Assembly (NCBI GenBank): GCA_946965045.2 | Contig: OX337240.1 | Location: 434,001 to 498,000 of the forward strand | Length of the DNA stretch: 64,000 bases | Source of the DNA: Epithemia pelagica | Taxonomy: Eukaryota > Protista > Bacillariophyta | Direction of reading: 5' to 3' | Shown here: piece by piece, positions 30,583 through 59,117 of the stretch | How the letters are laid out: each line of letters opens with the position of its first letter | Numbering within the stretch: the first letter of the stretch is position 1 | Notes under the pieces: model-generated | The model's database searches: none | Told to the model about the DNA's origin: nothing | Seen by the model: the letters and a program-made list of their open reading frames with translations, nothing else | Translations under genes and position numbers: made by a program

Positions 30583-30630
30583 CTTATGGATCTCAGTGTC
30601 TCGTTGATTTGCTTCTGTCTGTTTGGTTGG

Positions 30631-30844
30631 TGTTGAAACACAACTCCGGTCGTACCGTATAAGTAACCACTAGAGATGATCTCGTGTTATTTTAAAAAGA
30701 ATGAGCCTCCTCTTGGCTCATGTGTTTGTTTCGCCTCGATCTTGTGTCTATGACTCTGACGTGTCACCAAAGTCCATTGGGCCTTTTCCTCTTCAGTCGC
30801 ACTTTTCGTTTCCTTTGCCTTACTCGCATCCACTTGTCCTAACA
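30631..30844 (-). repeat. 3' LTR of copia A
   Basis: Direct repeat of 36309-36522; differences at 30635, 30660 and 30722. Confidence 0.97.
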
Positions 30845-33800
30845 CACTCCTTCGCGAGGAATGGTATTTACTAGTTCTCGGGATATTCATTAGGGCATCA
30901 CGAAAAGTATAGAAGATGGATCCTTGCAACGGCTTCGTGTGAAAGTCAGCGATCATTTCTTCAGTAGGGCAATATTCAATGCGTAAGTCTTTCTTGTCAA
31001 CACGATCCTTGATATAGAAATATCTGATGTTGATATGTTTTGTTCGTTTGCTGCTTGACGCACGTCCATTTTTCTCGAGCAAGATGGTACTCTTGTTATC
31101 TTGATACAAGATCACGTCCTTTATTGGATAGCCTTGGGCCTCCATAAATTGCTTACTCCACATGATCAATGGAAGTCCATCGTGGACCCCAATTAGTTCG
31201 CTTTCAGTTGAACTTCTGGCAACTAATTTTTGCTTGCTTGACATGTTCAGAGCGGCCCCTTGTCCCATTGACATGCCTGCTCCAGTATGTCCTCGCATAT
31301 TTGGATGAATTGCGTATGACGCATCAATCCACCATTTGACAATGCCACTCCCATCACAATTGAGGCGTAACAGGAGGTCTTTTGTCGACTGCAGGTATTT
31401 CATTAGTCGGGAGAGTTTCCTCCAGTCTTCTTCAGTCGGCTCAGCAACTCGAGTACTCAAGAAAGCCAGAGTTGCTCTCAAATCAGGTCGTGCCCGTTGG
31501 GCCAAATACATGAGCTGCATGGTGAGACTATGGAAGTAGTCGGCTTGGTCTTGTTTCAGTTTTGGGGACTCTTCTGTCACCATGAAGAGATAATTAGCTG
31601 CTGGTGTCAAGGCTTTGCCATGGAATTCCTTTGGCGCCTCCTCAATCAATCCTTGGATATATAATTGCATATCGACCATAAGGGTACCGGGCTCACTAAA
31701 GTCCAACCACATTCCCAGATAATCATGACGCTTGCCACGTGAAATGGACAGTTCACCAAGGGTGGCAAAAGTGTTGTTCAAATCCTCAATGATTTGCGTT
31801 ACTACGGCAGGATCTTTGTGAGAGATCTTAAGATCGTCCACATGCCAGGTAAGAGTACATTGATGGCCGTTGATTGTTTTGTTTGCCACACAAGAATCGT
31901 ATGGATTAATCTCGAAGCCCCAGCTTTTCACAACACTTGTGAGCTTCTCCCAAAATAGTCTTGCTGCTCTGAGTGTACCGTATAGAGCTCGTAGTAATTC
32001 CACATATATAACTTTTTCTCCACGTTCATAAACCACAAATGGTTCGTAGCTTTTGTCAATTTCGATCAAGAGGTCGACCATCAGTCCCGTTATACGCATA
32101 TAGACGTCCTTGTCCATGATTACTTGCATAAATGCACCTGGGATGTCAACTACTGCCACCTCTCGCTTCTCCATCGCGTCAACTTTTGCCGTGATAAATA
32201 CCGCCTCGGTTGATACTGTTGGTGAGACTGTGTCTTCCTTTGCAATATGACCCCGCTGCTTTCTACCGTCTGCACAACCACGACCTTTGATCTTCCCATT
32301 CCTTTTTCTTTTTAGGAACATCAAGTATCCTAAGGCTTGGCGTATTTGTTCTTTCGTTAGTTGGCTTTTGTGAATTGCTCGAATCACGTCTCTGTCATGA
32401 AGTTGTAGAACTTCTTTCTTGACTGCCGAGACTCCCAGATCTCCAAACATCCTCACTCCTTGTTTCATACCCATCTGTGGAGTTTCGTTGGTAGCGCTCG
32501 TCACATAGATATCATGGTCATATCTATGCGCGTAGCTACGTTCTCTATTTGTACGTAGATTGTATCCTCGTTCCGATGGGTCTCTATCGCCACTTGGTGC
32601 TGCAGTGGGTTCTGTTCTGGGTTCCAGGGCCGGCTCAGCTTGGTTCTCTACTAACATGTTGTCTGCCACGGCTTGATCAACAAAATATTCTATATTTTGT
32701 CCGTCCTGTTGGTCAATCTCAGTTGCCAATACAGGATGTTCATTGAATTCTCCTTCGTGATACTGCTCCACTCCTGGATTTTCAGCTGGAGCATTGATTG
32801 GACCATCGAAAGGTTCTTCTTCTGCAGCTGGAGCATTGATCGGACCATCGAAGGGTTCTCCTTCTACTGATGGTTGGTCGAATACTTGATCATCGTTTTC
32901 CACATCCGCCACTCCTTGATCCCCCACTCCTTGATTTTCCTCCATCTCCTCCATTGGATCACCTACTCCTTCCTCTTCTACCTCTTCATCCACTTCTTCT
33001 AGCTCACCGTCAATATACTCTTCATCATACCGAAGATCAATATCTTGCTCTTCTTCGTCAACAATGAATTCCTCATCGTTTGATTCATCATCATCATCAA
33101 ATTCGAGGGCTACAATTCGGTTGTCACGATTGCCAAATGCCAAATTTGGGTACCGATCTTGCGCATTGGTTAAGTCATACACGCGTTTTTCGATGCCTTC
33201 AGGCATTGGCACAATTGTTGCATGATTCCTGTTGATGATTCGGCCAGTGACTAGGCTCATGAAGTAGTATCCTCCCTGGCGGTTCCCTGTAGGGCGAAGG
33301 GTAATTGCTCCCACTGTTCTTGGTCCCATGTTGTTTGAATGCTGCTCGTGGGTTTGGACGTACTGACCAAATTCAAATTTGCAGTGACGATTAAAGTCAA
33401 TCATTTCCCCAGTTACGAGAGTTCTAGGGCTGAGCGTGTTCGAAAGTCCTTGGGATGCTGGAAAAGCGTTCAGCCAATAACAAGCATACTTTGCCAGTTC
33501 AATCACCATAATTCTTGGGACATAGCGAAATGGGAGTGTGTTATATACACAACGCATTCGTTCCTTGAGCGTTCGTATGTATCGCTCCACCTCACCAACA
33601 TGTTCTTCTCTTGAAGTTGGGTTGAGCTTGATCCCAACGTTGTTGAGTGCTGCATTGATCTCTGTCGTATCAAAGGCTCCATCAGCTAAGAGAACACGTG
33701 GTCTCAGATCTCCTCGTCGATATATTGACGCTACCTGTTTGATTGCCGTAATGACAGACTGATCTGTAACTGACGGTAGGGTATGGACTGTTCCGAACTT

Positions 33801-35666
33801 GATATTCCGAGAGATGGTGACAAGGAAGCCCACACCATTAACATGCATTACATCCATGCTGAGAACAACATCTTTTTGTTTGTCCGGGATGGGGACGTCA
33901 ACAAGTTCTTGGAATTCCACTTTGTGTGGGCGTCTTCGCGTTGTTTTTCCTTTTAGAATCCCTATGTCGGGTCCAAAGATTTTCATTGCTAACTTGACAT
34001 CATGACTCGTGAATGGGCAATTCGGAAGTAAATTTGAGTCCAGAATCTTACACAATTCACGGTCACTTGGTCGCCCTATTTTTGCTTGAAGCGACCGGAC
34101 TCCCTTAGCTCGAGCAACTTCATTCTCCGTATATCCTTGCTTATTCTTAGACACAGTGGTGACTAGGCATGATTTATTATCTGAATTACGCTCAGTATAA
34201 TACAAGCCCTCTCCATTTGATTTGAAGCAGTCCACCTGGTCTCCATTTTTGTCATATACTGTGAATGTATCGTTGTCGTCGTTGTACTTGATCTTGTGGG
34301 TTTTGGTAATAATATAGAATGAAAGGATGTTGACCCAGCCCCCTTGGTCAAACCAGACCGTTCCATAAGGGTCAAATTTGCCTTGAAGTGCTGTTGTCCT
34401 GGATCCCCCATGTCCCCGTATTGTTATCTGATGTGGGGCCTTGGATGGTTGATTTCGTAGAAGTTGTGGATTTGAAAAGACATGGACTGTTGCCTGGTTG
34501 TCGAGTAGGATCCAGGTCTTGGGTATGTTAGTCTGGGAAGTTGAAAGAGAAAGAACAGGTGAGGTTGGAATAACAGTTGATATATGGTCAGTATGATTCA
34601 AACCTTGTTGATTGGCACCACCTTGGGTGTCGCCTTGATTTGTAGTTGTTGTAGTGGTTGTTGAATCGGTGATGAATGCAACACCAGTACCTCCATTTGC
34701 ATTTGTCGTATCCTGTGGACTCTGTTGTTCTTGTTTTCTTGTCATTCTTGCATCCATGATTGCTCTAGCGTTGGCCAAGGTAGCTGGATAAATATTCTGT
34801 CCATCTAGGAAGCTGTTATGAAGATGAGCTTCATACTCCTTCTGCTGGCATGCTCGAATGAAGCGATTGGCGATCATTCTTTCTTGAGCTTCTTTTGTAT
34901 CCTCATCGATGGCTTTGCCAGCACGTCCATTTTTCTTGGCAATCTCTTCAACATAGGCCGCATCATAGAGGATAATGCCAAGTTCCTCTATCACTTTCAC
35001 CTTCGCCTTAAACACTTCATAGAACTGGTGGACACTCTGACCGGGATGCCGTTTCAGGTGATAAAAGTCAAACCGAATTCGATCCATTGCCATTCCAGTG
35101 TAAACTCTCCCAGGCTGGTAGGTGAAGGTAGTTGTTTTTATGAGCTGCAATAATTCAATCCCGTCTCTCTTGGTTTGAATTGATCCAAATTCTTTGTGAG
35201 CACGAAGTTTATCCTTGAGGAGCTCTGTTGACTGTCCCAATATAATACTATATAGAGCAGATCGAAAATCTGCCACTGCATCTCGCTTATCCATCATTCG
35301 CTTGTACTCCATCTTCCAGGCTTCGACTTGGATGTTGGTTGCAGTAGGTCCTGGCTCCGTTGGTGTAACTGGATCTTGTAGGTTGAGGTTCTCCACAGCG
35401 ACTTGAAAATCTTGGTTGTATTTCGAGAACTTGGTTCCGATGTAACCGATTAATAATTCTATGTTTCTTAAATATCTCTTCGCTTGGGAGTCTTCAGCGT
35501 AATCGAAAATGCACCCTTTGAGCAAGGGCTCTTGTCCTTCAAATTTACTATTTGTACCTCCTCGGTTGCGTCCGCCACGACCACGGCCTTGGTTTCCTCT
35601 ACCTCGTCCTTGTTGTCCTCGTCCTCTACCACCTGAGTCCATTTGGTCAGGTCTTGCTTCTGACAT
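30687..35666 (-). CDS. Gag-Pol polyprotein of copia A (1659 aa, intact)
   Basis: RGG-rich N-terminus; gag helices; protease WILLDNQAT; integrase SMDVMHV..LADGAF..VERYIRTLKE; RT ADGRKQR, VDIPGAF, LYGTLRAA, WHVDD; RNase H WWIDASY, SSTESE, YQDNKS, ADFHTKP. Confidence 0.97.
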   Translation of the reverse strand: MSEARPDQMDSGGRGRGQQGRGRGNQGRGRGGRNRGGTNSKFEGQEPLLKGCIFDYAEDSQAKRYLRNIELLIGYIGTKFSKYNQDFQVAVENLNLQDPVTPTEPGPTATNIQVEAWKMEYKRMMDKRDAVADFRSALYSIILGQSTELLKDKLRAHKEFGSIQTKRDGIELLQLIKTTTFTYQPGRVYTGMAMDRIRFDFYHLKRHPGQSVHQFYEVFKAKVKVIEELGIILYDAAYVEEIAKKNGRAGKAIDEDTKEAQERMIANRFIRACQQKEYEAHLHNSFLDGQNIYPATLANARAIMDARMTRKQEQQSPQDTTNANGGTGVAFITDSTTTTTTTNQGDTQGGANQQGLNHTDHISTVIPTSPVLSLSTSQTNIPKTWILLDNQATVHVFSNPQLLRNQPSKAPHQITIRGHGGSRTTALQGKFDPYGTVWFDQGGWVNILSFYIITKTHKIKYNDDNDTFTVYDKNGDQVDCFKSNGEGLYYTERNSDNKSCLVTTVSKNKQGYTENEVARAKGVRSLQAKIGRPSDRELCKILDSNLLPNCPFTSHDVKLAMKIFGPDIGILKGKTTRRRPHKVEFQELVDVPIPDKQKDVVLSMDVMHVNGVGFLVTISRNIKFGTVHTLPSVTDQSVITAIKQVASIYRRGDLRPRVLLADGAFDTTEINAALNNVGIKLNPTSREEHVGEVERYIRTLKERMRCVYNTLPFRYVPRIMVIELAKYACYWLNAFPASQGLSNTLSPRTLVTGEMIDFNRHCKFEFGQYVQTHEQHSNNMGPRTVGAITLRPTGNRQGGYYFMSLVTGRIINRNHATIVPMPEGIEKRVYDLTNAQDRYPNLAFGNRDNRIVALEFDDDDESNDEEFIVDEEEQDIDLRYDEEYIDGELEEVDEEVEEEGVGDPMEEMEENQGVGDQGVADVENDDQVFDQPSVEGEPFDGPINAPAAEEEPFDGPINAPAENPGVEQYHEGEFNEHPVLATEIDQQDGQNIEYFVDQAVADNMLVENQAEPALEPRTEPTAAPSGDRDPSERGYNLRTNRERSYAHRYDHDIYVTSATNETPQMGMKQGVRMFGDLGVSAVKKEVLQLHDRDVIRAIHKSQLTKEQIRQALGYLMFLKRKRNGKIKGRGCADGRKQRGHIAKEDTVSPTVSTEAVFITAKVDAMEKREVAVVDIPGAFMQVIMDKDVYMRITGLMVDLLIEIDKSYEPFVVYERGEKVIYVELLRALYGTLRAARLFWEKLTSVVKSWGFEINPYDSCVANKTINGHQCTLTWHVDDLKISHKDPAVVTQIIEDLNNTFATLGELSISRGKRHDYLGMWLDFSEPGTLMVDMQLYIQGLIEEAPKEFHGKALTPAANYLFMVTEESPKLKQDQADYFHSLTMQLMYLAQRARPDLRATLAFLSTRVAEPTEEDWRKLSRLMKYLQSTKDLLLRLNCDGSGIVKWWIDASYAIHPNMRGHTGAGMSMGQGAALNMSSKQKLVARSSTESELIGVHDGLPLIMWSKQFMEAQGYPIKDVILYQDNKSTILLEKNGRASSSKRTKHINIRYFYIKDRVDKKDLRIEYCPTEEMIADFHTKPLQGSIFYTFRDALMNIPRTSKYHSSRRSVLGQVDASKAKETKSATEEEKAQWTLVTRQSHRHKIEAKQTHEPRGGSFFLK

Positions 35667-35668
35667 GC

Positions 35669-36271
35669 TTATGATTCTCGAATGAGTTTCACGTTGTTGA
35701 GTTGTCTTTGATGTTCTTCGAACTTATTTGTGATCTTGTTCCAAATGCGGACCCAAACTTGCTCGCCTGACTTTGTGTATCTTACTACAGTCCCTTGAAG
35801 ATTCGAAATCCCCCGAGCGTGTTGTGCCAACTTGACAGGTGTGAGGACTGAGACTTTCGAGTGAACTTGAATCACGTCTGCTACTTCTTGTTCTTCTGTG
35901 TCTTCAACTTCAATTGCTGCTGCTTCAGGTAGTAGTTCACCTCGTTCTGCTTGTCCCAAAATATGTTCTTCTTCTTCAAGTGCTGTTCTGTATACTGCTC
36001 CTGAGTCGGCTTCAAACTGGTTTCTTGCTTCACGAAGCGCTTGTCTATACCGCGTATTCGAAGTAGCACGTTCCTCTTGATAGCGCTGTTCTAACTGGGC
36101 TTTATCAGCCCAGTACCGGCGGTCCACCGCACGAAGACGGTCTTCGTGGGCTTGTTCCAGCTGGCCGGTCTTGCGCTTTTCTGTTCGCTGGAGGCGTTTA
36201 AAGGCAGTTATCAATCTTGAGATTGGACCATCCGCGGGACCTTCAGAACACGGGCCTTCACTATTGGACAT
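35669..36271 (-). CDS. Extra upstream ORF of copia A (200 aa; coiled coil plus small beta-barrel-like domain)
   Basis: Lies between the PBS position and gag-pol; its stop is 2 nt before the gag-pol ATG; homologous to ORF 58142-58846. Confidence 0.8.
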   Translation of the reverse strand: MSNSEGPCSEGPADGPISRLITAFKRLQRTEKRKTGQLEQAHEDRLRAVDRRYWADKAQLEQRYQEERATSNTRYRQALREARNQFEADSGAVYRTALEEEEHILGQAERGELLPEAAAIEVEDTEEQEVADVIQVHSKVSVLTPVKLAQHARGISNLQGTVVRYTKSGEQVWVRIWNKITNKFEEHQRQLNNVKLIRES

Positions 36272-36308
36272 TCAGTGTAAGCTGAATGATTGTTTTCTTT
36301 TTAAAATA

Positions 36309-36522
36309 TGTTAAAACACAACTCCGGTCGTACCGTACAAGTAACCACTAGAGATGATCTCGTGTTATTTTAAAAAGAATGAGCCTCCTCTTGGCTCATT
36401 TGTTTGTTTCGCCTCGATCTTGTGTCTATGACTCTGACGTGTCACCAAAGTCCATTGGGCCTTTTCCTCTTCAGTCGCACTTTTCGTTTCCTTTGCCTTA
36501 CTCGCATCCACTTGTCCTAACA
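36309..36522 (-). repeat. 5' LTR of copia A
   Basis: TG...CA, 214 bp. Confidence 0.97.
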
Positions 36523-36555
36523 GTATGAAGAAGAAGTGAATCCATTCTTGTCCAC

Positions 36556-50809: not shown

Positions 50810-51061
50810 CAAACTGCGAACGCAATAATCAACCATGTCGCGCAACAGACGGATCGTTTTGACCCAACAACTATGGAAACAACAACAACGAGGAAGCAAC
50901 AAACAACGACCTCCCGAACAACAACAACAAGCACCATGGATGCAACAAGGTGATACGCATGTCTCGGCTATGGCCTTCTCGTCTTCCTACCCTCCTACTG
51001 CTGGTCCTATCGAACGACAGTGAACGGGAAATCGAATCGCGGCAATCAGACGGCGACAACG

Positions 51062-51301
<240 letters not shown>

Positions 51302-51629
51302 TACGCAACAATCAATCGATAGCCTTGACGAGGGTGGTGGTGTATAGGGTTGAATCTCGACGGACAATCCTCGTCGAATGGGTCGATGGGAGGAGGCGGA
51401 TGGTCTCTGCTAGGTTCTCTTGTTTCACTTGCTCGACAATCTGATCGAGACGTTTCACGGCACCCATGGCTTTGGCTACGGTATCGGCTGTGAGTATTCG
51501 AGCGTCGTTGTTGTCGTTTTGTGCCCGAAAGCACGTTTGGACAAACTCCATGGCATCGGCCACCGTCACATTGTCCGAACCGGAAGTTTGAAACCTCATC
51601 CCAGTCCGTACAAGAGGACAGGACATGGG

Positions 51630-52967: not shown

Positions 52968-53180
52968 TGTTGAAACCTGTAACGAACCGTGCTGTAAAGG
53001 CAACAATTCCTATAACAAATTACGTATTCTCCTTAGAATGAGCACTGTTGTTTGTTTCGTTGCTCTCCTGTCCACGTCGTTTCACCTCAGTCCATTCGTC
53101 ATCATTTGCAGATGGATCTTCGCCTTGCTCAGTCGCTGTTTTCGTTTGTTCTGCGACTCCTCGCGGGACTTCCTTCAACA
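52968..53180 (-). repeat. 3' LTR of copia B
   Basis: Identical to 58905-59117 on base-by-base comparison. Confidence 0.97.
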
Positions 53181-58846: not shown

Positions 58847-58904
58847 GCAGTGTACTTCACCTCAAAATGAGAATCAAGAGGTAGTTATTTTTCTAAGGAG
58901 AATA

Positions 58905-59117
58905 TGTTGAAACCTGTAACGAACCGTGCTGTAAAGGCAACAATTCCTATAACAAATTACGTATTCTCCTTAGAATGAGCACTGTTGTTTGTTTCGTTGC
59001 TCTCCTGTCCACGTCGTTTCACCTCAGTCCATTCGTCATCATTTGCAGATGGATCTTCGCCTTGCTCAGTCGCTGTTTTCGTTTGTTCTGCGACTCCTCG
59101 CGGGACTTCCTTCAACA
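58905..59117 (-). repeat. 5' LTR of copia B
   Basis: TG...CA, 213 bp. Confidence 0.97.

Follow-up and report, generated by a model that had tools for sequence, protein, structure and literature searches.

Probable self-priming by the RNA 5' end in a group of Ty1/copia-type retrotransposons from diatoms

The window analysed here, a 64,000-nt stretch of contig OX337240.1 from the diatom Epithemia pelagica, contains a 5.9-kb LTR retrotransposon, Copia A, on the minus strand. All features of the element lie on that strand and are given in window coordinates. The 5' LTR (36309-36522) is 214 nt long, has the termini TGTT...AACA and is a direct repeat, at 99% identity, of the 3' LTR (30631-30844), which is likewise 214 nt long and differs from it at 3 positions. 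Downstream of the 5' LTR lie ORF1 (35669-36271; 200 aa), whose ATG at 36271 is 37 nt from the LTR end, and, in a different frame, the polyprotein ORF (30687-35666; 1659 aa), the stop of which is located within the 3' LTR. This ORF extends 158 nt into the 3' LTR (30687-30844); the C-terminus of the polyprotein is thus encoded by U3, and the polypurine tract GAAGGAGTG (30845-30853), directly upstream of the 3' LTR, lies inside the ORF. At the polypurine-tract position, AAGGAGTG is kept in elements related to Copia A. The 5-bp flanks of Copia A, read on the element strand, are unlike (CATAC at 36523-36527 versus CCAAC at 30626-30630), and perfect 5-bp target duplications occur in most of its relatives. 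With its unlike flanks and near-identical LTRs, Copia A may be a recombinant of two copies.

The reverse transcriptase (RT) of Copia A is of the Ty1/copia type and matches the Pfam family RVT_2 at residues 1121-1321 of the polyprotein (42.2 bits, with a cut-off of 31.6). PF07727 was present in all 120 of the 120 relatives listed. Only 338 residues follow the RT, and searches with Pfam (E-values up to 5), NCBIfam, PDB sequences and motif patterns identified no integrase, protease, RNase H or zinc-knuckle, and nothing beyond RVT_2, in the polyprotein; the copia-type domain order, with the integrase upstream of the RT, is putative and is read from the position of the RT. ORF1 gave no family match above the cut-off. 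Three related elements (L050-L052) are devoid of ORF1, and their polyprotein begins 5 nt past the primer-binding site (PBS). Copia A is placed outside the Tf1/sushi group because its RT is copia-type and not Ty3/gypsy-type; the combination that marks that group, a Ty3/gypsy-type RT with the integrase located after RT and RNase H, was not found in this element.

The PBS of Copia A, TATTTTAAAAAGAA (36295-36308), adjoins the 5' LTR directly. A sequence-only reading of this DNA had proposed that these 14 nt (36308-36295 on the element strand) are the exact reverse complement of a 14-mer in the element's own LTR, that GCTCA directly precedes this 14-mer, from which 57 nt remain to the LTR end, and that the PBS has no TGG start such as a tRNA complement would have. 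Sequences and coordinates were confirmed in every respect: the PBS pairs at 14 of 14 positions with the LTR 14-mer TTCTTTTTAAAATA (36379-36366), the spacing and the preceding GCTCA (36380-36384) are as described, and the absence of a TGG start extends to every PBS examined. The 37 nt before ORF1 contain neither a TGG nor an alternative candidate PBS. The 14-mer, which is the proposed self-primer and with which the element RNA would begin, divides the LTR into a putative U3 (36380-36522), assigned as the promoter part from its position upstream of the 14-mer, and a 57-nt loop (36309-36365) consisting of the rest of R and U5. A further copy of the 14-mer is located in the 3' LTR (30688-30701; G000:C16:464688-464701).

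Several controls bear on this complementarity. The runner-up match of the Copia A PBS within its own LTR reached only 9/14. When control 14-mers were taken from the internal regions of 26 elements and compared with the element's own LTR, none of 9,672 matched at 13/14 or better, and the best matched at 12 positions. Within the Copia A family, the 14/14 match was found at all seven 5' LTR copies (7/7), and sequences following 3' or solo LTRs gave only 1-6/14. A count over the 60.5-Mb genome gave 40 copies of the Copia A 14-mer, as compared with 0 of its reversed control, and these genomic 14-mers are spaced as an LTR 14-mer, a PBS 71-73 nt off on the opposite strand, and the copy in the other LTR at a distance of about 5.7 kb.

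Elements related to Copia A are numerous in this genome, with 53-74% amino-acid identity in pol. Twenty of them were taken, their LTRs being set by self-alignment, and genome elements at 72-74% identity were covered through pattern matches only. Together with Copia A and a second element of the window, Copia B, these 20 elements yielded five PBS types, each complementary to its own LTR 14-mer at 13-14 of the 14 positions. In all five types the 14-mer is located 55-60 nt before the LTR end and is preceded by CTCA or TTCA. Copia B, also on the minus strand, has a 5' LTR at 58905-59117 and a 3' LTR at 52968-53180; its PBS, TATTCTCCTTAGAA (58891-58904), is complementary at 14/14 to its own LTR 14-mer, the putative primer TTCTAAGGAGAATA (58962-58975), which lies after GCTCA and 57 nt before the LTR end. 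Near Copia B there is a tandem array of about 40 copies of a 9-nt unit (50990-51358).

Ten further PBS types, all with 14/14 complementarity and one of them GC-rich, were obtained from other assemblies, namely two ENA assemblies, one NCBI assembly, one JGI metagenome and several Logan assemblies. Relatives of Copia A were found in the diatoms Mayamaea and Nitzschia; a metagenome scan for relatives returned one 2-kb locus, which was uninformative. In total there are 15 distinct primer/PBS pairs, from families sharing 44-74% pol identity with Copia A. Every one of the 15 is a 14/14 Watson-Crick duplex, with changes on both sides at most of the 14 positions, and none of the 210 base pairs is a G-U pair. 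A matrix of each PBS against every LTR, self versus non-self, is diagonal. The geometry is equally constant in that the PBS starts at the first base past the LTR. The loop spans 51-104 nt; the 14-mer is located 55-70 nt from the LTR end, or about 103 nt from it in two families. On the sequences compared, this arrangement, shared by 15 element families, is real and extends across the lineage; its kind is known but uncommon.

Counted by element, the match is 14/14 in 28 of 31, 13/14 in two, and absent in one. These counts exclude L032 and L039, which have no LTR pair, and L043, in which the 5' LTR is rearranged and devoid of the 14-mer segment. The element lacking the match, L040 from Mayamaea pseudoterrestris (GCA_027923505.1; L040:2380-2620), is 5.2 kb long, with 100% identical LTRs and a perfect target duplication; its post-LTR sequence pairs with the LTR over 7 nt only (TTTTCTC with GAGAAAA). 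L040 may be a deletion derivative, or may be primed in another way. A different irregularity was seen in L031 (G000:C6:3378513-3387242), where the terminal repeat is 874 nt instead of about 240 nt and a second copy is located 16 kb off on the same contig; this layout points to a segmental duplication, or to a tandem arrangement of which the element is part.

In 14 of the 15 families the pairing does not extend outward by even a single base; the remaining family extends it by 3 bp. If the primer is copied over its full length into the PBS, the RNA would have its 5' end at the outer border of the duplex. TCA stands directly before the 14-mer in 12 of the 15 families and is absent in three, and together with the first bases of the 14-mer it reads TCATTCT or TCACTCT; in Copia A, GCTCA plus the next four bases gives the initiator-like TCATTCT. 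The oomycete initiator (INR) is YCAYTYY, with TCATTCT as its commonest form (PMC3599244), and an initiator-like consensus proposed for P. tricornutum is TCAH(+1)W, where +1 is the base after TCA (PMC4686930). The motif at the 14-mer start agrees with both. The sequence-only reading had put the transcription start at about the A of GCTCA; judged by these motifs and by the duplex border, the RNA of Copia A more likely starts at the base after TCA, that is, at the first base of the 14-mer.

No TATA box was found in the U3 of Copia A. An ACGT-core motif, often GACGTGGC and thus resembling a G-box, occurs about 35-50 nt upstream of the 14-mer in U3 regions that are otherwise diverged; its sites include 36400-36450 of the window and the U3 of L031, L035, L044, L041, L050 and Copia B. 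It may be regarded as a candidate promoter element.

The segment from the 14-mer through the PBS is predicted to fold into one hairpin per family, with the 14-bp duplex as its outer stem. For Copia A the hairpin has a minimum free energy of -23.5 kcal/mol (z = -4.2). When all families were aligned with MAFFT, RNAalifold gave no consensus structure, owing to misalignment in the variable loop. A consensus was therefore built from a six-sequence seed, followed by covariance-model alignment of 16 representatives and pair counts. Three helices were obtained. The outer stem is fully canonical across the 16 representatives. The inner stem, predicted in every family, joins the bases just past the primer to the conserved terminus of the LTR; 80-90% of its pairs are canonical, and it shows a few compensatory changes and modest covariation. 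The third helix is a small apical hairpin, invariant in the covariance-model alignment, which in the Copia A loop is predicted as a conserved hairpin of the GTTGC...GCAC type. Self-priming of Tf1 reportedly requires a U5-IR-like stem-loop, to judge from the title of a study on that element cited in PMC7175516, and the predicted inner stem may be comparable to it, with modest support.

We consider it probable, at about 80%, that Copia A is one of a large set of Ty1/copia-type elements of diatoms that prime minus-strand cDNA with the 5' end of their own RNA, in the manner of Tf1, and not with a tRNA. This is the self-priming that the sequence-only reading had suggested for Copia A, and it gains strong support from the covariation of the 15 primer/PBS pairs, the perfect 14-bp duplex and the shared geometry. 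The sequences themselves show the complementarity, where it lies and how it covaries, and that neither a tRNA-type PBS nor, for the 14-mers checked, a tRNA gene carrying them is found; we infer from them the start site, cleavage by RNase H, the choice between cis and trans, and a PBS that descends from the primer. In the proposed cycle, RNA polymerase II would start at the TATA-less initiator (TCA|TTCT), yielding an RNA that begins with the 14-mer. The 14-mer would fold back across the loop, 57 nt in Copia A, and pair with the PBS directly past U5, and a putative RNase H of the element would cut after nucleotide 14. The RT would then extend the freed 3' end through U5 up to the new 5' end of the RNA, and the cDNA would transfer to the copy of R in the 3' LTR. 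Plus-strand synthesis would finally copy the primer into DNA, so that the PBS would be rewritten in each cycle. Such rewriting from the primer would account for a duplex that is invariably perfect Watson-Crick and has a fixed length of 14 bp.

The same scheme makes a prediction about descent: both 14-mers of the progeny LTRs would come from the 3' LTR of the parent, and the progeny PBS, through the primer, from the 14-mer of the parental 5' LTR. In element L030 (1231-1324, 7279-7363), position 14 of the primer is a C in either LTR, and the PBS keeps the T that pairs with A. A mismatch of this kind is expected if LTR 14-mers and PBS descend from different parental LTRs.

Four other explanations of the duplex were weighed against self-priming by RNA fold-back. 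The composition of the Copia A 14-mer, in which 13 of 14 bases are A or T and which contains the palindrome TTTTAAAA, could raise the suspicion of a chance match in AT-rich, partly palindromic sequence. The control 14-mers, not one of which reached 13/14 in 9,672 trials, refute a chance origin, and pairs that contain G and C or lack a palindrome behave no differently from that of Copia A; the probability left to chance is practically nil. A host tRNA, tRNA fragment or other small host RNA might instead act as the primer, the LTR copy of the 14-mer being incidental, and other Ty1/copia lineages are indeed primed by the 3' end of tRNA-Met or by half-tRNAs (PMC6317226). For this, however, there would have to be 15 separate host RNAs, every one of them with a counterpart at the equivalent site of the corresponding LTR, and no PBS has the TGG start expected with a tRNA. 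Host tRNAs, which the sequence-only reading had named as a check on its proposal, were compared by the coordinates of exact 14-mers, and the outcome speaks for self-priming too: the 14-mers of types 1, 3 and 5 showed the LTR/PBS spacing, and in spot checks by coordinates none overlapped any of 63 tRNA loci, defined as genome matches of the Rfam tRNA model. ARAGORN found no tRNA in the 64,000-nt window. On this evidence a host-RNA primer is close to refuted and must be called extremely improbable.

The duplex might also be a structural RNA element, serving packaging, dimerisation or translation control of ORF1, with something else as the true primer; in favour of this are the stability and conservation of the hairpin and its place close before ORF1, whose ATG is 37 nt past the LTR. 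Yet the partner of the 14-mer starts at the first post-LTR base, exactly where the 3' end of a minus-strand primer must lie for the LTR to be rebuilt, and the 37 nt before ORF1 offer no other PBS candidate and no TGG. A purely structural stem would, moreover, tolerate G-U pairs, of which there were 0 in 210, and a solely structural role is accordingly quite improbable. Alternatively, the 14-mer RNA could prime in trans, as a 5' fragment of another element RNA such as a co-packaged partner; the primer would still be self-derived, but with no intramolecular fold-back. Priming in cis and in trans look alike in sequence data, and two features could favour RNA dimers, namely the palindromic cores in the 14-mers of types 1, 6 and 9, and the TACGTA formed in many families by the last two primer bases and the next four. 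The constant loop length and the inner stem joining both arms suggest, on the other hand, an intramolecular hairpin, and we regard priming in trans as unlikely.

The closest mechanistic parallel to the self-priming proposed for Copia A is that of Tf1 and Tf2 of Schizosaccharomyces pombe, members of the Tf1/sushi group, in which the PBS directly past the 5' LTR is also complementary to the beginning of the RNA of the same element. In Tf1 the start of the RNA folds back and RNase H frees a short primer, with no tRNA involved; the primer is made up of nucleotides 1-11 of this RNA, the cut falling between nucleotides 11 and 12 (review PMC7175516). The primer of the Copia A group would be 14 nt long instead of 11, and the RT of the Tf1/sushi group is that of Ty3/gypsy elements (chromoviruses), whereas that of Copia A is copia-type (RVT_2). 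The Tf1 mechanism was demonstrated by experiment, whereas that of Copia A is read from sequence.

Self-priming has precedents among copia elements as well. The statement that Ty1/copia elements classically use tRNA holds for the lineages primed by tRNA-Met or half-tRNAs, but needs qualification for the plant TAR lineage: among 203 elements of that lineage, 89% are predicted to self-prime, and self-priming has also been proposed for the plant copia elements Houba and Osr-1 (PMC6317226). TAR elements, which are compared here by their description, resemble Copia A in being Ty1/copia elements without a tRNA-type PBS and with predicted self-priming; they occur in land plants, and the Copia A group in diatoms. 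The fungal GalEa elements are also copia elements without a tRNA PBS, and carry a conserved palindrome or hairpin, the 'conserved hairpin site', at the PBS position (PMC5445492). No LTR complement of this site was found in GalEa, and the Tf1 model was rejected by the authors, whereas the LTR complement is exact in the 15 families related to Copia A.

Copia elements are abundant in diatom genomes, and some of them respond to stress. To our knowledge, the priming of diatom copia elements has not been described so far. The diatom CoDi elements (Blackbeard, Surcouf and others), compared by description, are Ty1/copia-type with short LTRs, as is Copia A, and neither PBS nor primer is discussed in their description (PMC2806351). 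In the literature check that the sequence-only reading had called for, neither a PBS nor a tRNA primer nor self-priming was seen to be mentioned for CoDi elements, and none of the papers searched linked self-priming with diatom LTR elements. Self-priming in copia elements is thus already known, and for diatom elements we found no earlier report.

The Copia A group would represent a third major self-priming lineage, after Tf1/sushi and plant TAR, the latter being compared by description. Hairpin self-priming has been proposed to predate tRNA priming, and a third lineage bears on this proposal (PMC3601003). More broadly, self-priming by a 14-nt primer that is defined by where transcription begins could be ancestral and general in the diatom, or wider stramenopile, copia clade and share a common origin with plant TAR, perhaps even with Tf1/sushi; we hold this to be rather doubtful. 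If it were true, it would support the view that LTR retrotransposons began as hairpin self-primers and took up tRNA priming only afterwards, and initiator and PBS would form a single co-evolving unit, rewritten at each replication cycle.

In practical terms, tools that seek a tRNA-type PBS would miss the PBS of self-primed elements. A suitable search rule is that the 14 nt after the LTR are the reverse complement of an LTR 14-mer following TCA. The PBS sequence, in turn, predicts the transcription start family by family, and the 15 natural compensatory variants provide a ready design for mutational tests.

Copia A itself is present in three public runs of one study, on contigs of up to 509 kb, which reveal neither starts nor ends of its RNA. 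Logan contigs of 5.0-5.3 kb from several public runs (L048, L050-L054) have variable ends that lie within or beside the primer-loop-PBS hairpin; L048, for example, starts 58 nt before the PBS and has its far end exactly on the final 14-mer base. These contig ends could be an assembly effect or could be RNA ends.
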